Source: Ascidiella aspersa
Lineage: Eukaryota
DNA length: 64,000 bases
Assembly: GCA_963924565.1 (NCBI GenBank)
Contig: OZ004609.1
Span: 27,900,001 to 27,964,000, forward strand
Direction of reading: 5' to 3'
Part shown: positions 37,877 to 61,500 of the stretch, one piece after another
Numbering within the stretch: position 1 is the stretch's first letter
How the letters are laid out: every line of letters begins with the position of its first letter
The notes under the pieces: model-generated
Told to the model about the DNA's origin: nothing
The model's input: the letters and a program-made list of their open reading frames with translations, nothing else
Database searches by the model: none
Made by a program: the position numbers and the translations under genes

Positions 37877-40499
37877 TCATACACTGCTTTCTTTGTGCAT
37901 TAATCAATCAATGAAATCAAGTTTTTTTAGCGCACATAAGAAATATCTTCCCTGAGAATGTAGCGAAAAAGCTTGATTGTTATTGAAAACATTGCGCCTA
38001 AAAATGGCAACCAAACCTCACATGTAAAAATACCCAATAATAACGCAAAGGTGTGTGATTATTCACTTTGAAACGTAAGATTTAATCGTCACCTATAACT
38101 CTTTTCGTAGCCGCCAACAGCAAAATCATCGCGCTCGCAACAAATAGATCACTATTTGCGCTCGAGTCGGCCAGAAACACCAAATTTCCTATCGAAAGTT
38201 AATCCCAAAGCAACCAAACATCCCGAAAATCAGCATAAAACATCACTAAACTCAAACGTAACAATTCTACTTACGTTTTACTTGCAAACAAATGTTCTCT
38301 TTTTTGGTGCTGAAAATATGGCAGCTTTACTATAGTAAAAAACGAAAATACTTTTGAAGTAAGTGGATTCACATCGGTAATGTAAGTTCAAACAAATGCA
38401 ATTTATTTGAAGCTTAAACCATCATCTGAAATTATTTTTGGTATACTTTGCCTGGTAGCAACAGCATATTTAATCATCGCGAGTTCCTTGTTTTGGAAAG
38501 GTCTAAATAAGCTAATGTCACGCTTCTGTTAGCGCACTGCTGACACTATTTTAAATAAAATTAGTTACAATAAGTTTCACTCAATTAATTCAATTATTAG
38601 CATATCAAGAACAAAACAAAAAACTAAAACGGGAAGCCGTATAGTTTGGTCGCAATACGTCTGAAAGATCCGCTGTCTTTTAGTAAAAATATTGTATTTT
38701 CCTGAGCTTTTACGCAGAACCGTTGCGCTTTTCCAATTTGTTACCTGAAGGATATGTTTTCTTAGAACACAATTGTAATGAAATTACTTAAACGTCAGAT
38801 TTCGGAGGTATTAGGTAACTCCACTGAGGCTCTTTGTCTTTACTATAGCCCCTTAGCACCAAAACCTATGCCCATAAAATATCATCTCCAAAGAGTGCGG
38901 AAGTGTTTTAAGGAGGGGGTGGGTGTAGACAATGAGATAAAACAGAACAAGGTGAATGACTGGAGCTAATTTATCAATATAAGAAAACTTTATAAACACC
39001 AAATTTTAAGCAAATGTGAGTACGGCAATAAGTTTTACCGTGATTTGTATCAGTTTTCCTTTTAAAGTTGCTACTGTATTAAGTTAGAGCAGTGCACTAC
39101 TTTTTGAAAAAGTGTTGCCTTTTTTTTCTGGGTTTTTGCGTTTACCTGTGTTTTATTGCTGATAGTTTTATAGCAATCCTCTGGTAACGGGAGATTCCAT
39201 AAATTTTCGATTTCACCTTTTCGAAATTAAAAAATGTGATCGTCTTTAAAAGTTATATTTTTATATTTTGGCGAAAGGTTGCTTGTTTTTTTATATTGCC
39301 TGACATATAGTTTTATAACTATTAACAAAAAAGAAAATCAATCAATGTATTGTCTTGGTTCGCTATATTTACTGACCTAAAGAGTATTACATAGACATTG
39401 CTTACTTTTAGGTTATGTGACTAAATATACCTTCAAATTATGTATCTATCGATCGTGAAATTCACTTAGTTGCATATCAACAATTGTGTTGCTTTGGTGT
39501 GGTTCTTTTACAAAAATGAACGTTCAAATATGTAAGGCGATTACGTAACACGGCAATAACAAAAATGCGTTTTTTTTTAGTTTCCAACCTTGCTGTTCGA
39601 AAATAGCATTTAAAAGTTGTAAAATAATACAAAAAAATTAACTTAATTTAATAAAAACTGTAATATTAAGTAGCATTGTCGAATCATGTATAGGACAATT
39701 AGTGTAGTAATTGTGAAAATCTGCATTAATTCGCGACTATAGTAAACAGCTTTGACAACATCTGCGCAATGCCTATTTACGCAAGACGTGCTTTTATATG
39801 GCGGAAAATACAGAGTAATTAGTATCACATGCAATACACTTTGTTACTGACAAAAAAAAAGAAATTGCGTTGCACAAATCTGTCAGGGATTTGGAAAATA
39901 TAACTTTTTAAGGCAAAATGTTTTATCCACTACGATCTCAAATATTGCACCTACCAACAATTAGCACTACAGTCACACGTATTACATAGCGGTTAACATG
40001 GGGTTAACCTTCAGGTTTAAACAGGAATGGTTACGGGAGTTTATACTCAATCGCCTATAGGCCTTCAGAAAGACCCACATAAATTAATAAGTCTTGAACG
40101 ATTAGGTTTTTGTAATTACTGCATGATATTATGAAGTAAGGTTGTATGTGATATAAGTGTATGCTTATATACAAGCTTAAAGTTGTTAGTGTGACGAGCT
40201 TATCATGCGCGCAATGGAACGAAACTCGCAGTTGTTAAACAATGCATGCGAACCACTTAGCTGGCCTGAAATTTATACAAAAAACATTAAGTTGAGGTTG
40301 TTCAAGAGAGTTAGCCTACTGCAAAAAGCAGGTTAAGGAGCGTTAAGCAAATACACAGTTTTCCTCTGTGTTAGGCCAGCTCTCGTCTATTACAACAGCG
40401 TCGACCGGACCGCGACAAGGAGGTTTTCGCAAGAGCGGCGCTACGGACCAAGTGCGCGCGCGCCGGCTGCCACAGTCCATAAAAATCGCAGTCACTTGT

Positions 40500-43400
40500 T
40501 CACTTGAGCAGTGAGAGCACGGAGTCGATCTTGTCGCGCGCGGGTGAGGAAATAGCCAGGCGCGCTCGCTCCTCAGCCGAGTGCATGAGGTAGAGCTTCC
40601 AGGCGATCAGATTCATCCAGTCCGATTTCTCGCCTGGCGTCACAGCGTACATGTAGTAGGTGCGGTCGCCGAACGTGAGCCTTCGAAATTAGAAAGGCAT
40701 AAGAAGTCTTGTAAACGACTTGGCGTGGCAGCTTTGAAAGCGGTTGGTGCCTTCGTATTTTTATAAGCACCCCGACGCTTGTTTTTCAAAGGGGCTTCTC
40801 AGATCTCTCGCTTTGTCCAGGGGTTGTGGGATGACATTATTTTTTAAAAGGTTGCGAGGCACTGAATTATTAGGGTGTTATTAAACGAGGTTCAAAATAA
40901 AAAATATATATATAAAACTAGAACAGTAGCGCCCATGACTTTGTTGGTCCCCTTAAACGGGTTGTTATCTACGTAGGATGTATAGCCTAAACTAAATAAA
41001 CACGTTGCACTTAAAGGATATTTTCATTCGAAGGATAATTTTCTTTGTGGAACAAAGAAAAACAAGTAACGCGATAATGCAGCAGCAATCAATGTACCCA
41101 ACTTACCCGAAGCAGTTTGGTTTGGATTGCGAACTGTTTTCGACGATCGAGGTACATTGTCGCAAATCCAACGTCGTTAATGCCTTTTCGTCCTATGCGT
41201 AATAAAATAGAACGAAGTAAATAACAAATTAAACAAAAAATGAACCATAAAAGTTCATACGCAGTATATGCAGCTTATACATACAAGAATGTATCCTGAT
41301 AAAATCAAATATATCGCAACATTGTTTTTGTTATTATTGAAGATATCGAATAAACCTATTTTGAGTTTTAATCAGTTCACATTGCATGCCCCGAGCAACC
41401 GCACTATTTCGGTAGGGTTTAATTGAGTATAAAAGCTAAGGAGACCAAAGAAGTTGTTCAAAAATATAAATTTATGTTTAAAATTTGCAGTAAATGATCG
41501 ACTTGATTAAACCTGTCAATTTCACTCCAATTAACTTTAACTTCATTGGCGTAGCTCAAATTTTGGCCTTCGTCCAAGTGCGATAATCTTTTCGTACAGG
41601 GTTGCGCTCAAAAAATATCATATGAATGATTGATAACATACACCAAAGCCCAAAACAATTTACATTATAGAAACTATAGATCACTTACGATCGGCTCGTC
41701 AAAGTATTTCATTTCGTTGCTTCGTAACGTGAACCATCGGATCTTCCAGCTCTGTAAATAGAGAATATGGTAAAAGTAAAACAACCGAATAAGAGATCGA
41801 CAAAATGAGTACAAGTGCTAGGTGAAGCAAAATATAAGGTGGCGAAAATTAGACCATTGCGGGTTACCAACCTACAGTTACAGCCAACGGTAAACAATAA
41901 ATAAAAATGCACCGATGTGGCAGACACTTCAACGCTGGAGGCACGTAACTAGCTCGTGTATAAACCACAACATCCAAAAGTCAATTTTTTAAAACATTGA
42001 TAAAATTGTTTTGGAGAAGACAAGTTTGCTTTTTAATTCACACTCAGTTCGACTTATTTTCCGCGTTAATAAATCATTGTAGTTCGGCTAAAAAAACAAT
42101 GAAAAGTCAAATTCAACCGCCCGTCAAAGCAATTTGCTTGAAATTATTACGACATAAAATGGCGTACGAACCTTAACGCTTCCGCCCCTCTTGGTGAGAA
42201 AGCCTTCCTTGTTAAGCAGACTGTTCTCCTCCCACTTTTTCTGCATGTCGTCACAGGCCACATAGGCCCTTTGCAACACTTGGGCCCGCTTGGCAGTGTC
42301 AATGGCCATCGTGGCTCCCTGGGCGATTTGAATGGCCGAGAACACGTCGTCGATGTCGGGGTGGTTGGACGGGGTGAACACCGCCAGAATCTGTAGAAAA
42401 TAGCAGTTTGTACCGTAACTCAGTGGTTCTCAACCGGGGTGCCATTTCTAATGTCCAAGGGTGCCGAGAGATATTTGAGAATTTTTAGGACTGATTTTTG
42501 CTCAACTCTTACAACGTTTTGTGTAAGATTAGAGTGGAATAAATTCAACTAAAACTTTCTATACATTGTGTGGAGTTGATTTGTTGCTCCAGCTCCGGTT
42601 ATTGTGACATTCCAGTGATTTACCTAGGGAAAAATCTTGTAGGGGTGCCGCAAGACATAAAAGTATGAGAACCATATGCCGTAACCAGTGGTTTCCAACC
42701 TGTTTTACACGTAGGAGAGCAGCTTTGGGATGATGTGAGGAGTTTAGGAAAAATAACACAAGTAAAATATTATCGGGTCTGCCGTAGGTTATAATATCTT
42801 GTTGTCACATTACTCAGATAATAACGTAAAATCTGCGGCTATTGGGAGTTTTATTTAAACATGTAAACTAAACTGGAATTGTTTTGTCTAAAACCGCCAG
42901 GTGATCCGCGGCCACAACGGTTGAGAATCATTTTAATTCATTATTGTCAGCTGAGGGCTTTGCCGGGAAATTGTAAACAAGCCTTTTGAAAGGAGTTTGC
43001 AACGCTCTCAGCACCAACAGTCGTTATCGTAATCAAGTGTGTGCAATATTAAACACGTTATCGTACGGATATTATCACAGTTTGTAATCATTTATACATA
43101 ATAGGAAAACCTTTTAACGCGACCGCCGACTGTCTATTATCAGATTTAAAATGCATTGCTCCCACGAGCAAATAACGTCCAGCAATGTGTAATATCCGCT
43201 TGAGCAATGCGTAGAGTTTCACAATATTATTGTTAGCATTTTGATTTTAGTTTCAATTCTGCATCTGGTATCTTGATATTCGCTTATGTACTGATTTTAC
43301 ACACTGTCAATCATAGAAGCCCTAAAATAAATAAATTAGAAAAATTAATATTCCGTCGAGTTATTTGGGAAGCAAATTTCACCTACTTCGGCAACATTCT

Positions 43401-46400
43401 AAAATTCAATTTTTTAAATGCCCCCTATCTGTAACGACTTTGGTGTCGTTGAGGAAAAGATATACCAGCCGTTATTTAAATACCAAGCCGTTGATATACC
43501 AACAATTGTTGTTGTTTAGATATACCAACCGTTGTTTGACATTTCCCTTGATTTAAATATTAGGTCGGTGCGCCATTACGAAGTCTATAATTGCCTTTTA
43601 ATAACAATTATTAAACAAGGGTAAAGCGCTTTAGACCGTATCAGTAAAAGGTTGGTTGCACTTTGTCGAGTGAAGTTTTTGTCACGCCCTACATGGTTTT
43701 GACATGTCACTGTAACACTGTCCGCTCTATTCGCTTACAAATTGGTAACTATTTAACCTTAACGCGTTGAAATTAACTAAAACCTTTGGGCTTTTTGTCT
43801 TTTGGATAAGAAACACAGGCAACCGACCCTAGTTCCGGTTGTTCGTCAAAAATGTCGATATAAGGTTTTAAAGTCGACATTTTGCTTTGGCAGATTTGTT
43901 TCGAGGAATATCCATGCGAAGCGGCTTGCTAATCAACCAGCTTTTGTGGTCTATGGAAAATATCGCGAGGGTTCAAGATGCCAACCGAGCTTCGTATAAG
44001 TCAGCAAACTTAGGCGCACAGTTTGAAAGGCGGAAGAGATGTTTCACGTGGGCGGTTTAACGAAATAATATGACTGGAAGGCGGTTGCTGAGTTTTTGTT
44101 TATGCGGAAGTGCAGGTTCGCACAGCGCTCAAAGTCCAGTGACCATACCGACACCGTTGTATGACTGTCAAAGATGAAATCACGTCCGCTAAAATTTGAT
44201 GCTTGATCAATATCGTTGTTTGTCCAAATTTCAAGAAACTTTATCCAAATATACACGCTGGCAATATCTAACTATAGCTCGCGTGTAAACTGGACAGATA
44301 AGACATTAACCCTGCAAATATCCAAAGCTCCAACTTATTGCTTTGGTATTTGTTTTCTTGTTCTTTTCCACTGCACTACTTTAAACAGCAAACTAACATG
44401 CAGTTGCGGGAAACGTAATAAGGTAAATAAATTTCGCACAAATCATTTGTACATCTTTAAATATATGACACAGGCTACCTCGCAAGATCTGAACATTAGA
44501 AGAAACTTTGTTATGCGTAATATTTTCCGAAAAAAACGGAGGTACGATATGGCAAAAGAGCCTGATGCTTTAAAAAAGAAACGAACACATGTCGGAAGAT
44601 TACATTAAGACAAACCAATGTGATTTTGAAAAGGTTATGGTATTTTGCTGAGTACTCGAGTCAGTGATACCACCCAATAAACTTCATATTATACCTTTAA
44701 CAGCACGCCGAGCTTGCAAATGTGGTGTAGCGGCCTGGCGAGCAAAGTACACAGCATCGTGGCCTCGTTTGTCGTAAATCCCACAAGTGGACCTTCCGTC
44801 GCCCATTTCTGGAGAATATAATAGTCGGCGTAATACCGGATCTTGTAGGGACATTGGTCCTCTTGTGAGAACATTAGCCGCGCGCCTGTTTTATAGTTAC
44901 CCTACATCAATGTGTTTTCACAATTTCCAATCTGTTTTAATAAAACTAATTCTACGACATGAACTGTGTCAAACAATTAGCCAAATAGTGTATAAACCAA
45001 ACACTGTTTTTTATTCCGTTTTTATACTTAACTGAACTTCTAAAATAGTTATATTTATACCCATCTTTATTGTTTTACACAAAATTAAAACTCGGTATTT
45101 ATCGTCTTGGCGTAAATGTTTGAAAATGCACAATCGTGGTTAGTCTGACTTATAGCGCAGCTCAGACAGTTGCCGTGCGATAATATGATTTAAATTCCTA
45201 CTTCCCAAATATCAAAATCTTACAGTACTGCAAGGACAGGCATACATCTTTCATGCGACACGTTTGTATTTGCAGTGTATGGATTTGTTATTTCCACGAT
45301 ATGTTTCTTTACCCAAAAAACTTAAAAAAAAATTTAAATGTAACTGTTAAAAAACAAAATTAGACTAAAAAAGTTAAGGAAACATTCCACACGTACCTTA
45401 AGTTTTGCTTTAAGCGTTGTCATATTCAGCAAGTCGGCTGCAACTTGCTCCGATCGAGTGTGGTTGGCGCAGTAGATTTCGTAAGTCCGGAACGAATCTC
45501 GCTGCGACAAAAAATAGTTTTAAGTGGGTTTTACGAAGTTGCTTGGTGGATTTCTACACGCGAAATATGGAAGCAAGCGTTGGTCTAATGAATAATGATA
45601 CGTTAAAAAAAATAAACATGAAGGGAAGACTGCACATAGCGCCAAGCCGACTTGTTCGCCTAAATCTGAGGATGCGGAGTAAAGGTGCCGGACAGGGAAC
45701 TCGACGGAGTCGGACTAGACCTTCGGGATTTAACTAATATTATATAAGACAGCATGCAGTAGTAATTTGAAGCCGACAATACAGCTCATTGTAAATCTTT
45801 AAGTTGGAATAGAATAAGGTGGAAACGAATAGAATAAGGTGGAATAGAATAAGGTGGAAGTCTGAATGGGTATAACGTTCTACTTTTTTCACAACAATTT
45901 TAGTTGTACGTTATTGTTTGACGTACAACGTATTTTGATTCAAATGAAGTATTAAAATACTTCATATCGCGACCGGAAAGCAATAAGTGAATAATCGTGC
46001 ATTAATTTTATTAGAATTCTGCGCGCTGCTAAAACAAACCAACTTAGATTATAAAAATCGTTTCATTGACCGCCCATTGAATGACATTCTGAATGCACTA
46101 TTGTCTGATTAATTCTGCTGCGGTTAGCGGGCGACAAAATTACTGCAATTAATCGACAAAATCGCGGAAAGCGGGTCAGACAGCTCATTGGTCAAACGCG
46201 TCATCACAAAATGCGAATAAACTGGATATGCGTCATTCGTGATGACGTCAGCGTTCCGGTTCTGAGGCAAAAAAACAAAAACAATTGACAGCAATGATCG
46301 CGTGTAGGCCTCTACTGACAAATAGTAATCGTTTTTTTTGTCCATTCTTTGTGTTAGCCTTATCGGTTACCATAACAAGGCTATACCTTTCGTAAGTGCT

Positions 46401-49400
46401 GATTTTGAGGTAACGAATGTTCGACAATTTTAAAATAGTCATCCATTAATCGTCAAAAAGGTATAAGGTCAGTTTCGATCCAATTGGAGTCATATCATAT
46501 TTTTGACAACGAACTTTTTTGATTTACCAACGTTTTTAGGAGTTTAGGTATTTATAAGAAATTACGAAGAGAGGAGCCAATGTACATAAGTAGCATTTTG
46601 GTGAAAAAAATCAATAATCTGCTTTAAACCAATACCAGAAAATATAACAGCATTATAAAAAATAAATAAATATTAAAACATGAACATTTCACAACTCGGC
46701 ATATTTTTTTATTTTCAAATGTTTCTGCAACAACTTATTCAAATCTTTGTAAATGGCCGGGTTTGTTGAATTCTAAATAAAGGAATCCGGTGGCACTATA
46801 CGCAAAGACAAATTGTATTTAATTATCGACAAGCTTTCGTACAACCGTGCTTCATCGAGTCAAAGTATAAATGCGACCAACTTATTTAAAAGGCCATTAT
46901 ATTTGTACTGTAATGACACTATGGTGCTGCCCAAACTATTTGCCGGCTTCTCCACATTTCAACTTACCACTTTCACAAAGACTCCGCCTGCTCGCGATTC
47001 GGCCATTTTCCGGTAATAATCCTCCGTCGTCAGCTGTCCGCCCTCCTGACTTCCCAGGAGCTCCTCCAGGGCGAAGAGGATCTTCTCGTGGAGATCCAGG
47101 ACGTCGACGACGTTACCGAACAGCGCGCGCACGTGACCCTCGTCCACTTCGAACTCGATTTGCTCACAGCACTTGTCCAACTCGTCTTTCATCACCTGCG
47201 TACAAACTCGTCTTTCAACACCTGCGTTCAGGATGAAAAGGCGATTGACCAAAGCTCATCCAACGATTGGTGCAGCACGAAAACAACAGGGTCGCATTTG
47301 GAAGTGAATTGTGAAAAGGAAACACCAAGTTGGACAAATTCTGTATAGCTTTTGATACCTCTTTACATTTGCCTCCTTCCTTTAACAGATAAATAATTAA
47401 AACGAAATTTTTACACTTAAAGTTGCATGACCAGTTGTATTGATATAAGCCGACTTGCACATAATCCTAAAACTATACTTCAAAAATATTTTAGTATAAT
47501 GGACTTGGTTCGTTGACAACAAATGGCAAGACAAGTCAAATAAAGCAGTTGAATCCGGAAAAAAGCAAGGAAAAGTCGTTTCAAATCCTAGCAAATTTTT
47601 TTTCATAAAACCTTATTAGTCCAACTCGTCTTCCTTCACCTGCTTTCGTGGTAAAAAGCCGACTGGGAGTTAAGAGCGTTTGTGTTACTTTTGGAATCTA
47701 TTCCAAGTTGGTTGGTTAAGGACTAACTACAAGCCACTATCACAGGTTTTTGTATTCAATGCCAAAGCTTGAAAATCTAAGAAAATAACAAGAAAGTCGT
47801 TTCAAATTCACTTCAAGTTCAAGTCTACTTCATAAAAAACACATGTTAGTCCAAGTTATGTAAGCTTCATAGCTGGAAACAACACAATAATGCATAACTA
47901 TTGAACTTCAACTATAAAAAACACAATGAACTATAGCCATCATTCGTGAAAACTGTTTTTGTGTGAAAAATAAAATAAAAAGCAACTTGTATTCGCCCAT
48001 GTCGCAAAACGTCACTATACAAAAATGCCATACACACAAAGTTCGACCTTCTTTATTATGCTGGTAACAAACGTTTTATGCAAGCGGTTATTCCATTTAA
48101 TGTCAGATCTTACACCATTTGTTTACCATACATCACTTTTTTTCAAATTTGTCAACATTTCATTTTACCCGTATTAAAACGCCAGACCTTCGTGTGTGTG
48201 TATAACTATGTATATTACCCTTGGTAGGGTGTATTAATAAATGGTTGTGTATGTCTTCTTTGCTTTAGGTAAGAACCAAATTTGTTTGCACTAGCCTTTC
48301 GCTTTTAATGTAGGCTGCCCTTGAATACACCACACGTGACACGCAGTAAATGTTTTGCCCTATGTTCTCAGTTGCTTCTCTTTTAAAAACTGTGCATTCA
48401 AAGCTTTCTCTATAGCCATAGGTTATGCAAATTTGCCCCGCCGTCAACCTTTTACGCTAAATGCCATTATAGAAACGCATTAAGAATCACATATCAGCCG
48501 GGAAATATGTAACATTTGCTCTCACATGCGCTGTTCCCTCTAAGAAATGTTCGTCTTGAACAAATAATTATTTTAGTGAATATGAATGTTTTAAAGTTGA
48601 GAGAGCAAAATCGTAAATCAATTACAAACTCTGCGAATTTGTAGAATTATTTTTCATTAAAGTGTACGAAAAGTACACATTCAATAGTTTGCCCTTGTTT
48701 TAGTTAAATGTTAATTGTTGAATCTTGATAGAGAGAACTTGTAGGTTGTAGGCAAGTGGTAATTTCTACTGCGCTTATCTGGTTGTGCTGCAGTGGGAGC
48801 ACTGTACACACGCCTCCTGAATAGCAGACCTTATACCCAGTCACACGATAGGCGTGCGTGGAAAAAATGTCTCACTCGAGATCGGCGCGCAAATTATTCG
48901 CGTCCCGAAAAACTCCTGCTTTCGCACTAACGTGACTTACGGCACGGATTCGCATTCGATCGCGGAGGACCTGTGACTATGTATGACGTACCAGGGGCCC
49001 ATTTTTCATTTTTTGCTCCAAAAAGGAAACGCGTTGTGGCACAAGTGTACACTCTACGTCACTGCCGGAAAATAAGTTGCAGGGGTAAGCAGTACGTTGG
49101 GTGAGTCAGACACGCCTCTGCTGGTAAACGCACGTGTGCGGAACCGTGGTTCGAATGTACCTTTACCAAACCCTTCCACTTTCCAGGTTATTGCAATTCT
49201 CAGTCACTTTTCACTAATGGTCAAATTGGATCACACATTGACTTGAGCTATTGCGACCCACACTAGTTTTATTACAAATCAACTACAGATTATAGCATTT
49301 GTCTTGAAACTTTTGTTGAAAATACACTTTAGTCAGAGGCAACGTTCTCAAAATTAATTCATCAAAGAAATTGGAACCTCAGTTTGAAATAAAATTTCAT

Positions 49401-49849
49401 ACACAACTTCACAACGGAAATGGCGGCATCCTTTTGTTGAGAAAGATTAAGAAAATTACAAAAGGAGTAGCGTTGTTGACGTAACAAGCCGGAAAGAGGC
49501 CAATATTTATCAAAAAAAAAACACGCCCAAATACGTCCAGTAAAAACTGATCTAAAGAATAGGCTATAACAAGTAATTCAATTCCGTTGAATTTAAAACA
49601 CAACTTCCCTAAACCGGGACATGTTGTTGTATTCCAACCGGTTTCTTATTAGGCAAACCGTAACCCTTCTCAAGAAACACATATACTTACATCAACAACG
49701 TAGTGCAGGACTTTCACATATTCCTTCTCGTGTTGTACGATTTCTTCTATGACCGAGCACCGGATTCGGGCTTGTTTCCCAAGGTCAGCAAAGGTCGTCG
49801 ACAGGACCTCGCACGTGGCAGGGCCAGAACCGTTTTGCATGTTTACCAT
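40500..49849 (-). CDS. DH (RhoGEF-fold, P-Rex-like, degenerate) plus DAPP1/Bam32-type PH domain protein; 8 exons, 384 aa
   Basis: Exons 49849-49691, 47195-46968, 45501-45397, 44808-44695, 42390-42172, 41751-41689, 41192-41107, 40680-40500 total 1155 nt, all GT-AG, open to TGA. DH: RCSVIEEIVQHEKEYVKVL, LFGNV.D.L.LH, FRTYEIYCANH, LL.RPLHHICK..LLK, HPD. PH: KEGFLTKRGGSVKSWKIRWFTL..EMKYF..LDL.QC..NCF.LTF.DRTYYM.A..W..LIAWKL. Confidence 0.9.
42421..42930. mobile_element. Compound hAT MITE (two left ends, one right end)
   Basis: CAGTGGTTCTCAACC at 42421, CAGTGGTTTCCAACC at 42686, GGTTGAGAATCA at ~42919-42930; GGTGCCG subterminal motifs. Confidence 0.6.
45806..45859. repeat. 15-bp tandem repeat x3 (GAATAGAATAAGGTG)
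   Basis: Read directly. Confidence 0.85.
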
Positions 49850-58500: not shown

Positions 58501-61500
58501 TACACAAAAATAGTTTATTATCTCTGTCTGTCATGTGGAAGGTTGTACAAATTTGTAAAATATAAAGTGTTTTACATAATTGTTTCCTTATAAGTACCTT
58601 TAATCTAAAATGTGCATAAACTTAATGCACCTTTGACTGTTAAAGACAATTTTCAAGAGCAGTTCTTACTGATTGACATGGTTCTAAATATCCAAAAATG
58701 ATGTTTTCAGCTTGTTTTTTTTAACCAGAGTTTTATTAGTGATGAGCAGGTGTGACAGTGTTGTTAGTGGGCTAACTAAACCTATGGTATGTTAGTGGGC
58801 TAACTAAACCTATTGTTCATATTTGTGCCTTTATCGCCGGCCAAAAGTTGCTTGGGCCTTTCAATTCCCGACTCAAATGTCCTGTTTCAGGCAACTGATC
58901 TACAACTACCCGGAGCAGCTATTCGCCGACGCCGGCGTCATGGCGATCGAACACGCCGACTTCGAGGGCGTCGAGCGTCTCTCGCTGGTGCTGGGCGGCG
59001 ACATCTGCTCGACCTTTGACCGCCCCGACCTGGCCAAGCTCGGCCACTGCGACCTCATCGAGGAAATCATGATCGGCGAGGACAAGCTGCTGCGATTCTC
59101 AGGTGCGATCTTGACGCTTTTTGGAAGTTTTTTTTCATGTTTTTTTGCTGCTGCCCGCATTCTGGTGGTAGGATTATACCGAGACTTTGATACGTGTTTT
59201 TAGTTATTTACGCCGTAGAGAAGTTTTAGTCTGCTGATAGCTCGGATTTTTAACAACCCTAAACATGATTTTAATTGTTTTTTTTAATCCTCACTAAAAG
59301 CAATTCTTGAAATGAGGGCTGATTTTAACTGATGTCCCTTATAATTCCTTGTAAGAAGTGCATTTTAATGTGACGAATTTTAAACTATATTCAGTTTGTA
59401 CTTAGAATACCGTTTCGTTTTTTTAGATTTATCTTGAGGTCGGTTAGGCCCAACTACTATCGTAAAGATTTTCAGTTTTTTTTATCAGACGCAATGAGAA
59501 TTTGAGCGCTGGTAGTGCTCTAAAAGTAATGTATGTATTAGCACAGGTGTTCTTAACCTGTTGGGAATGCCGCAAAGGGGTCATTTTACATCGCTAATTT
59601 TAACTGTTAACATAAAAAAGTGGTATCAGTCTATTAAATATTTATTTTTTTGAATGCAAATTGGCGAACCGCTGCTGTATGGCCTCATGCTATTCTATCC
59701 GGCCGCCATGAAACCCTTTTATTATTACTTGGCCGCCAGGTGTCGCACGCGCCGAGGCCTGCACGATCGTGCTCCGCGGCGCGACCAAGCAGATCCTGGA
59801 CGAGGCAGAAAGGTCGCTACACGACGCCCTTTGCGTGCTTCAGCGAACTGTGGCCGAGACGCGCACTGTGCGAGGTGGCGGTTGTTGTGAGGCGCTTATG
59901 GCCAACGCTGTGCATGTGACCGCCATGAAGACGCCGGGCAAGGAGTCTATGGCCATGGAGTCCTTTGGACGCGCTCTTATGCAGGTACTGTAGCCGCTAG
60001 CCTATGAGGGGGGTCCTGTAGCCGCTATAGCCTATGCTATGGGCGTGCGGCGTTGTTTTGTATTACTGTAGTGATTTACCTCTTAAGCCCCCCAAAAGGC
60101 CTTAACTGTTTATAAACCGTTTAAATTTTAAAAGGAGTAGCCACTCGATTATTAATTTTAACTAGTTTAATTCTATATATCTACAGTTCTACACGCATTA
60201 TTGTATTCACGCGTCTTTCCTTTACAATGTTAAGTTAAACTTTGGTCAAAGGTACTATGGGCATTCAAATAGGCTGGTCACTGGTCAGCCTATTTATCCA
60301 ATTATCTAGTTTTTGTTCTATTCAACCAAAAAGAGACAGTTAAGTCTGATCAGCTTGATTTGTGGTAGTTTGGAGTTAAAAACTCGCCGTTCGTTTCTTG
60401 TCTTTGCATAATTAGTTGAATACCCTTAAAAGTTTGGACGGAATCCCGGCGTCTATTCTGCCTAACCGTGAGATTTATTCTCTCAGATCCCGATCACAAT
60501 CGCTGACAACGCCGGTTTCGACAGCGCAGAGTTGGCAGCCCAGCTACGAGCGGCGCACGCCGATGGAAAGATCGACTCTGGTCTCGGTAAGCCGTCGTTT
60601 GGTTGCTTATAACTCGTCTCCCTGTTCAGCAAGTCCTGTGCTGTGCCAGTGGTTCTGTAAATTTTACTATGTGGCGACCTTTGGGAATACAAACCTGGAT
60701 CAAAATATCCCATTTTCTGTAATAACCCGAAACCCCAAAAAATATGACCTGCTGTTAAAATATAATTATGCATGTTTGCATTCTTAAAGGTCGTGTCATA
60801 CTAAAACTAAAAGAACTGCTTTTAAGAATAACCGAAAAAATATGACCCGCTGTTAAATTTAATAAAAATCTCTAGTTGGAATAACATTTTGCACTCAAAA
60901 TCTCATTTCTAGAACAAACTATTGAAAATTCGATGCTATACGTTTATGCCAGGAACCTGATAAAGATAATATATATTTTTATTGTCGTAAAAACCCAAAT
61001 AACACTGATTAGTTTTTGTGGTAGTTGTCTTCAGTTTAAGAACCACTTGAGAAAGCCAAAGGGTTTGTCTTGCCCACAAGTCTCGGTACGTTCTCACGCC
61101 CTGATTAAATTTTTAAAACTTTCTTCGGGAAGTAAAGGTTCACTTTTGTTTAATGAGGCACTTCGCGGGTATACAGACAATGATTTTTTTTAAATTGTAA
61201 ACATTTTGCAGCTTGTCCAAATATTTTAGAACTGTTTTTTTTTTAGTTCGTTGCGTTATGAGAAACGTTGCTCCTAACCCCCCTGGTAAACATTTAACAA
61301 TCTAAAAATAATTATCTGTACCTCGCAAATAGCAATGCACAAAAAGTAACAAACACTAATATTATAGTTGTTGGATGAAGTACTTATATCGAAGCTACAT
61401 CTTGCGTAAAAAAACGCAGAGCGTTTATACATATTTCACGATGCCAAGCTTTGCCGTCAGGGTCCGGATAAGTAGAAAATATTTTGTTACAGTTGTGACA

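Follow-up and report, generated by a model that had tools for sequence, protein, structure and literature searches.

A compact DH-PH gene of chimeric P-Rex/DAPP1 ancestry in the ascidian Ascidiella aspersa

The window analysed here is the stretch of 64,000 nucleotides at positions 27900001-27964000 of contig C3 (OZ004609.1) in the 308.6 Mb genome assembly of the ascidian Ascidiella aspersa, and its minus strand carries an eight-exon gene for a compact protein in which a DH domain resembling that of the P-Rex family is followed directly by a PH domain resembling that of DAPP1. We regard the product, with a probability of about 0.72, as a DH-PH protein of chimeric P-Rex/DAPP1 ancestry that is recruited through its PH domain and whose exchange activity is more likely weak, altered or absent than that of a strong Rac activator. 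In architecture it is a DH-PH protein whose own PH domain was swapped for a stand-alone lipid-sensor PH. As an example of exons shuffled between two genes of the PI3K pathway it is unusually well documented: the genome still contains both parents, the intron phases are compatible, and the junction intron survives in a paralogue. The class of mechanism is familiar, and no new class is opened.

Gene model and expression

The gene spans 49849-40500 with a coding sequence of 1155 nt, corresponding to 384 amino acids (aa) and a stop codon, and all of its introns are GT-AG and in phase 0 except for the last, which is in phase 2 (Table 1). Translation starts at the ATG at 49849, with an in-frame stop upstream, and exon 1 closes in phase 0 on a GTAAGT donor after 49691. 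The stop codon lies at 40502-40500, beyond which the transcript goes on as 3′ untranslated region (UTR). Our re-derived model returned the same eight exons, protein length and coordinates as the initial annotation of this DNA, which had been made from the letters without database searches, and all of the motifs quoted there are present.

Transcription was examined in RNA run X3 of the same organism, in which one transcript contig of 2162 nt (depth 39.5) covers exon 8 and the 3′ UTR and continues upward through the gene. Its joints at 40679/41106, 41191/41688, 41751/42172, 42390/44695 and 44808/45397 equal the predicted junctions, and its loose end at 45502 reads as the 3′ end of exon 2. The contig joins exons 2 to 8, in support of the earlier proposal that exons 1-5 and exons 6-8 belong to one transcript, and the joint of exons 5 and 4 is also crossed by two raw RNA reads of run X4. 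The window locus is a real, spliced and expressed gene.

The two domains and their nearest relatives

The protein has the DH-PH module of the Dbl family, with a RhoGEF domain present and the PH domain starting a few residues after a 'WE' pair in exon 5. This pair closes the DH domain in P-Rex and aligns to aa 255-256, so that the DH-derived part ends at ~42229 and the DH/PH border lies inside exon 5, where the initial annotation had placed the junction.

For external searches, single window exons or orthologue proteins served as queries. Whole orthologue proteins were compared by sequence with all solved structures, and their matches fell cleanly into two halves. The DH half of the Ciona orthologue matched P-Rex1 (E 5e-22) and P-Rex2 (9.5e-22) ahead of Asef (5.6e-13), collybistin (1.4e-10) and Tiam1 (4.7e-7); the corresponding values for the Clavelina orthologue were 1.8e-16, 1.2e-12, 6e-7, 5e-9 and 0.0024, respectively. 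The earlier claim that the DH follows P-Rex is borne out by this gap between P-Rex1 and Asef in Ciona. The alignment of P-Rex1 to the orthologue ends at 'WEGSNL', which is the DH/PH border. A Foldseek search with the AlphaFold model of the Ciona orthologue, whose mean predicted local distance difference test score (pLDDT) is 77 with most of the DH at ~90, gave the P-Rex1 DH/PH tandem at the top, then Asef and collybistin. The ranking of P-Rex before Asef and collybistin fits the grouping of Dbl proteins in which PREX is a branch of the ARHGEF4 subfamily together with these two (Fort and Blangy 2017, PMC5499878). The DH domains of Asef (ARHGEF4) and collybistin (ARHGEF9) come next in similarity, but they score clearly lower against the window-type DH than P-Rex does, and the two proteins have an SH3-DH-PH order with a PH of the DH-associated type.

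With single exons as queries, P-Rex1/2 were the only solved DH domains matched by exon 2, and weakly so (E 0.016-0.19). Pfam gave faint RhoGEF matches on exon 1 (RhoGEF positions 1-20) and exon 2, with scores of 12.7 and 15.8 bits for such pieces, and a faint PH match on exon 6 (PH positions 17-36). Exon 4 had no Pfam RhoGEF match at E<=1 and no solved-structure match at E<=5, and exon 5 retrieved nothing relevant among the solved structures. The window exons align with the orthologues and with P-Rex along the entire DH; the DH part of exon 5 shares the motif T-P-x-x-H-P-D-x-D-D-V and the W-E end with the exon of the genome's own P-Rex, and it aligns to human P-Rex1 via the Ciona orthologue. 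When a family profile was run against the whole A. aspersa genome, DH exons were found only in the window gene, in a paralogue on contig C2 and in the canonical P-Rex locus, and 0 of ~30 other RhoGEF loci were matched. The DH domain is placed by these comparisons closest to the P-Rex family.

The PH half of the Ciona and Clavelina orthologues matched DAPP1 without gaps over ~100 residues (E 3.2e-22 and 1.5e-23, respectively), followed by myosin X (3.3e-15 and 3e-17), cytohesins/GRP1 (1e-8 and 2e-9) and TAPP1 (8.7e-8 and 7e-10). The distance between DAPP1 and myosin X in Ciona agrees with the DAPP1 type assigned to this PH in the initial annotation. The best PH match of window exon 8 was DAPP1 as well, at a weak E of 0.057 that ranked under several stronger, unrelated matches to designed propeller proteins. 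In word searches the nearest proteins outside the family were SH2-PH DAPP1 orthologues. The PH domain of the genome's own P-Rex is of a different type: it is 24% identical to the window PH and carries large insertions, and its first exon matches the P-Rex1 PH at E 4e-15. A PH tree of 96 columns sets the chimeric PHs, including that of the C2 paralogue, against the two DAPP1 PHs of this genome and an annelid DAPP1 PH across one branch (61% ultrafast bootstrap, 97.5% in the Shimodaira-Hasegawa-like approximate likelihood ratio test), with otherwise poor resolution; the own P-Rex PH was tried as an outgroup and set aside, its branch being too long to serve. Judged from sequence, the PH domain is closest to that of DAPP1.

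Neither relative shares the architecture of the window protein, as the initial annotation had stated. P-Rex1 and P-Rex2, the PIP3- and Gβγ-dependent Rac exchangers, have the nearest DH, followed directly by a PH of the lipid-binding type, but they differ in their P-Rex-type PH with a long β3-β4 loop, in a DEP-DEP-PDZ-PDZ series and in an IP4P-like C-terminal half. No DEP match was found near the window locus, and the protein ends 34 residues past the PH. DAPP1 (Bam32) has the nearest PH, but carries an N-terminal SH2 domain and a linker with the Tyr139 phosphorylation site, whereas the N-terminal 255 residues of the window protein are DH. The window protein therefore belongs to neither family: a P-Rex protein would have a different PH as well as DEP, PDZ and IP4P domains, and a DAPP1 protein would have an SH2.

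Orthologues in ascidians

Ciona, Clavelina and Styela have orthologues of this architecture, 373-385 aa long, and a fragment was found in C. savignyi. Exon 2 was compared with 1.84 billion representative proteins, of which 12 matched at E <= 0.001. Two of these, 357 and 373 aa long, were full-length matches of the right kind with a compact DH-PH build, and the short matches that were read (84-163 aa) align to exon 2. Bacterial cadherin and TPR proteins also appeared among the matches; they aligned in many short stretches and were rejected as repeat noise. Word searches with the 373-aa protein, the family profile and the PH alone returned Clavelina (373 aa), Ciona intestinalis (378 aa), Styela clava (384 aa), the Ciona savignyi fragment and three unnamed transcript-derived proteins. 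Full-length identity to the window protein is 49.5% for Ciona, 47.7% for Clavelina and 40.2% for Styela. On the orthologues, Pfam recognised RhoGEF with 65.9 and 90.3 bits (cut-off 27.6) and PH with 62.7 bits.

The window-type gene is kept in at least three ascidian orders, which dates the shuffle to their common ancestor or earlier. The initial annotation had supposed a lineage-specific domain shuffle, to be looked for in related species; the shuffle is supported and the same fusion is present in Ciona, Clavelina and Styela, so that it is shared across three ascidian orders and not private to one species. Outside ascidians, whole-protein, profile and PH-only word searches gave ascidian-type proteins and two DAPP1s alone, a result that is weak evidence of absence because few candidates were scored and the searches were length-limited. 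A search of the ESM Atlas gave generic DH-PH clusters alone. We take the gene to be a lineage-restricted addition to the tunicate Dbl repertoire.

Our literature searches found no paper describing the chimera, in line with the statement in the initial annotation that no described equivalent was known, but predicted proteins of this kind are already in NCBI under the automatic names 'PREX1-like' or 'PREX2(-like)'. Such names mask a different architecture.

Two details of the orthologues were noted in passing. The Ciona protein P0004 is without exactly the 21 residues of exon 6, i.e. PH strands β2-β3 and the Arg matching DAPP1 R184, and represents either a splice isoform with a dead PH or an erroneous prediction; that exactly these residues are missing implies that the exon borders are the same in Ciona. 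The C-terminal tail, encoded by the last 34 codons (40503-40604), reads E-R-A-R-L-A-I/L-S-x-P-A in the window protein, Ciona and Clavelina and more loosely in Styela. Its R-L-A-x-S-x-P part is perhaps loosely like a mode-II 14-3-3 or phospho-serine motif.

Parent genes and a paralogue in the same genome

The initial annotation had asked whether canonical P-Rex and DAPP1 genes exist elsewhere in the genome, and both do (Table 1). The canonical P-Rex on contig C4 continues past its P-Rex-type DH and PH into two DEP matches. Its occurrence in an ascidian deserves note, since a 2015 review describes P-Rex as absent from invertebrates (PMC4601503). Of the two DAPP1 genes found, the first shows an SH2 exon and the second the DAPP1 linker. 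In the first, on C7, the SH2 exon scores 16.5 bits, below the Pfam cut-off of 21, and the last PH exon matches DAPP1 only (E 8e-9). The two DAPP1-type genes differ in their intron positions within the PH, and both lack the Lys that the human protein has at K197.

A second compact gene, the C2 paralogue, likewise joins a DH of the P-Rex subfamily to a DAPP1-type PH. The first of its PH exons finds DAPP1 at E 5.9e-13, and on the family profile its PH exon reaches 90.8 bits against 44.9 and 35.8 bits for the DAPP1 exons. Three DH introns and the phase-2 PH intron are common to this paralogue and the window gene. Unlike the window gene, it has a canonical T-E in conserved region 1 (CR1), the motif Q-R-x-x-K-Y-P in CR3 and the α6 Asn, retains an intron at the junction and has no C-terminal tail. 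Pfam RhoGEF recognises its CR3 exon with 53 bits, the same exon has 42 solved-structure matches, and its DH is 21% identical to that of the window protein.

Table 1. Coordinates of the window gene (positions in the window) and of related genes elsewhere in the assembly (contig positions)
Feature	Coordinates	Strand	Content
Exon 1	49691..49849	-	aa 1-53; start codon and first DH helix (CR1), conserved Glu = P-Rex1 E56
Exon 2	46968..47195	-	aa 54-129; DH CR2 region; AG/GT borders, phase 0
Exon 3	45397..45501	-	aa 130-164; 105-nt DH exon with F-x-x-Y-x-x-Y-C motif
Exon 4	44695..44808	-	aa 165-202; DH CR3 region, degenerate
Exon 5, DH-derived part	42229..42390	-	aa 203-256; last DH helices to 'WE'; Asp at the P-Rex1 N238 position
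Exon 5, PH-derived part	42172..42228	-	aa 257-275; linker and strand β1, Lys = DAPP1 K173; continuous with DH part
Exon 6	41689..41751	-	aa 276-296; PH strands β2-β3, W-K-I-R-W-F (Arg = DAPP1 R184), K-Y-F (Tyr = Y195)
Exon 7	41107..41192	-	aa 297-324 and two bases; PH strands β4-β5; ends in phase 2 in a Gly codon
Exon 8, coding part	40500..40680	-	aa 325-384 and stop; PH β6-β7, C-terminal helix ending W-K-L, 34-aa conserved tail
3′ UTR	39536..40499	-	end approximate, inferred: X3 contig record 1 has 864 nt (record positions 1-864) beyond 40400; 40400-40499 contiguous
Canonical P-Rex (L018, L019)	C4 ~12.496-12.504 Mb (~12495913-12504190)	-	P-Rex-type DH and PH, then two DEP matches
DAPP1 gene 1 (L011)	C7:15951668-15953000	+	SH2 C-terminal exon, linker motif, PH
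DAPP1 gene 2 (L012)	C2:38511899-38513945	-	linker and PH seen
C2 paralogue (L007, L008)	C2:24595729-24602494	-	7 GT-AG exons, 351 aa, compact DH and DAPP1-type PH

Catalytic residues and lipid binding

The conserved Glu of CR1 (P-Rex1 E56) is present in the window protein and in 6/7 of the window-type sequences compared, a set made up of the window protein and six orthologues. At the position of P-Rex1 N238, the Asn of helix α6, the window protein has Asp, and all seven window-type sequences have Asp or Glu, whereas the C2 paralogue and P-Rex have Asn. The window CR3 reads P-L-H-H-I-C-K-L-G instead of P-x-Q-R-x-x-K-Y-P, with H-H for Q-R and L-G for Y-P, and this region is degenerate in most window-type sequences. 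The combination of Glu, Asn and CR3 motif that marks a competent Dbl RhoGEF is thus incomplete. Identity among the orthologues is 58-72% in the PH and 30-44% in the DH. Loss of the α6 Asn, the degenerate CR3 and the far better conservation of the PH than of the DH argue for a weak, altered or inactive guanine nucleotide exchange factor (GEF). Going by its residues, the protein is somewhat less likely to be a strong GEF than an exchange factor of weak or no activity, one that keeps its fold and perhaps its binding to a GTPase, and it would act as a lipid-recruited GTPase binder or modulator.

The alternative that the chimera is fully active, a compact Rac/Cdc42 exchange factor switched by PI3K lipids via its DAPP1-type PH and amounting to a minimal P-Rex, is possible but doubtful. 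The retained CR1 Glu, the frame that is open across ascidian orders and the AlphaFold confidence over most of the Ciona DH would suit it, as would the report that a single P-Rex2 mutant, N212A, may retain residual activity (PMC4601503). An active GEF is harder to reconcile with an α6 position that is acidic in every window-type sequence, with a CR3 exon recognised neither by Pfam nor by any solved DH, and with a DH that is evolving much faster than the PH.

The PH domain of the window protein keeps the Lys, Arg and Tyr that correspond to DAPP1 K173, R184 and Y195, and all three are invariant in the family. They belong to the basic β1-β2 motif of 3-phosphoinositide-binding PH domains (K-x-G...K/R-x-R-W-F) and, for the Tyr, to strand β3. 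R184C abolishes membrane recruitment of DAPP1 (PMC2193139). Since the core 3-phosphoinositide motif is kept, the PH probably brings the protein to membranes containing PI(3,4)P2 or PIP3, and recruitment by PI3K lipids is likely but not certain. Of the earlier description as a PI3K-pathway/Rho-family protein, the first part is likely in view of this core motif, but a Rho-family function is uncertain in a DH without the hallmark catalytic residues. The gene offers a natural experiment, a DH-PH module in which a stand-alone lipid-sensor PH replaces the DH-associated PH and the catalytic Asn is lost.

A tentative idea, which we consider rather improbable as a whole, is that the two genes form a functional pair. 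The C2 type would be an active mini-GEF targeted by PI3K lipids, the window type would be a conserved pseudo-GEF that damps or redirects Rac signalling at the same lipids without exchange, and the junction intron of the C2 paralogue would be a fossil of the shuffle. A pseudo-GEF of this kind would resemble the engineered P-Rex1 E56A/N238A in that the α6 Asn is lost in both; this double mutant is an established GEF-dead, dominant-negative form (PMC4601503).

Intron positions and the origin of the chimera

Comparison of intron positions and phases, suggested in the initial annotation, gave a P-Rex-like pattern in the DH half and a DAPP1-like one in the PH half. The window gene and the canonical P-Rex have four phase-0 DH introns in common, located after the CR1 exon, before and after the exon with the F-x-x-Y-x-x-Y-C motif, and after 'LLLK/LLLR' of CR3, and the first three of these also occur in the C2 paralogue. 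The 105-nt exon with phase-0 borders is found in the window gene, in the canonical P-Rex (L019 5993-5889) and in the C2 paralogue (L007 9913-9809).

At the domain junction, the P-Rex DH ends in a phase-0 intron directly after 'WE'. The C2 paralogue has a phase-0 junction intron three codons after that of P-Rex and two residues ahead of the PH-opening 'SK-x-GF', in the same column and phase as the intron preceding the PH exon of DAPP1a, one of the two DAPP1 genes of this genome. Within the PH, the phase-0 intron after window exon 6 coincides in column and phase with the second PH intron of DAPP1a, and a phase-2 intron in a Gly codon occurs in both chimeric genes and in neither DAPP1 gene. The intron between exons 5 and 6 is private to the window gene; that it might be shared with the other DAPP1 gene, DAPP1b, was considered and rejected, the DAPP1b intron being in phase 1 and three codons earlier.

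We propose that the DH exons came from a duplicated P-Rex gene and the PH exons from a DAPP1 gene encoding an SH2-PH adaptor. The most likely first step would be that the phase-0 intron following the final DH exon of P-Rex recombined with the phase-0 intron ahead of the DAPP1 PH exons; the chimera would then have been duplicated, and the copies would have lost different introns. The window type would have lost the junction intron, and this is why the border now lies inside exon 5. A single fusion is favoured mainly by the phase-2 intron common to both chimeric genes.

That the window-type gene and the C2 paralogue each took a DAPP1 PH in a separate event is unlikely. Two fusions would be compatible with DH domains as divergent as these, with the different DAPP1a-type introns that the two genes retain, and with an approximately unbiased (AU) test in which grouping the PH of the C2 paralogue with the DAPP1 genes is not rejected (p 0.44). 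Against them stand the phase-2 intron in the same Gly codon, the best tree, in which a single branch separates every chimeric PH from the DAPP1 PHs, and the family profile, on which the C2 PH exon outscores any DAPP1 exon. On sequence, with a short PH tree and this AU value, two fusions keep some probability.

An origin without any shuffle, in which an ordinary P-Rex paralogue had its own PH diverge and converge on the 3-phosphoinositide-binding motif, is very improbable. The P-Rex PH also binds PIP3 and the NCBI pipeline names the orthologues PREX-like, but convergence on a motif does not explain a gapless similarity to DAPP1 that extends over the whole PH, two intron positions with their phases in common with DAPP1a, or a P-Rex1 alignment that stops at the domain border next to a P-Rex PH so differently built. 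A mis-assembled or dead locus, in which exons of two neighbours or a pseudogene were read as one gene, is extremely unlikely, since the low depth in run X4 is outweighed by a single transcript contig that joins exons 2-8 exactly, an open frame with canonical splice sites, a DH/PH border within one exon and orthologues of the same length in other species.

Several points nevertheless weigh against a P-Rex/DAPP1 chimera with a lipid-recruited, weakened GEF, in addition to the AU result. As regards ancestry, the P-Rex placement of the DH rests on sequence and fold searches and the own-genome profile, and the introns of the DH may lie where they do throughout the ARHGEF4/9/PREX subfamily and not in P-Rex alone. 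Word-limited searches of other species turned up no orthologue of the C2 type. In the gene model, the joint of exons 1 and 2 is supported by GT-AG borders, frame and homology, the transcript evidence beginning at exon 2. As regards function, Asp or Glu in place of the α6 Asn may keep some activity. Finally, the window PH has Asp at the position of DAPP1 K197 and Thr at that of R206, and its lipid binding may be changed, because K197E abolishes the membrane association of Bam32; the K197 position is unconserved among lipid-binding PH domains (PMC2193139).

Other features of the window

Within intron 4, the stretch 42421-42561 has a transcript-contig depth of ~500-1100 in run X3, and most of the raw RNA reads that touch it continue into sequence of other kinds. 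This pattern suggests a short dispersed element that many abundant transcripts contain and that lies outside the mRNA of the window gene. On the plus strand, at 58823-59203, an open frame that is a putative exon of a CCT/TCP-1 chaperonin subunit would belong to a neighbouring gene.

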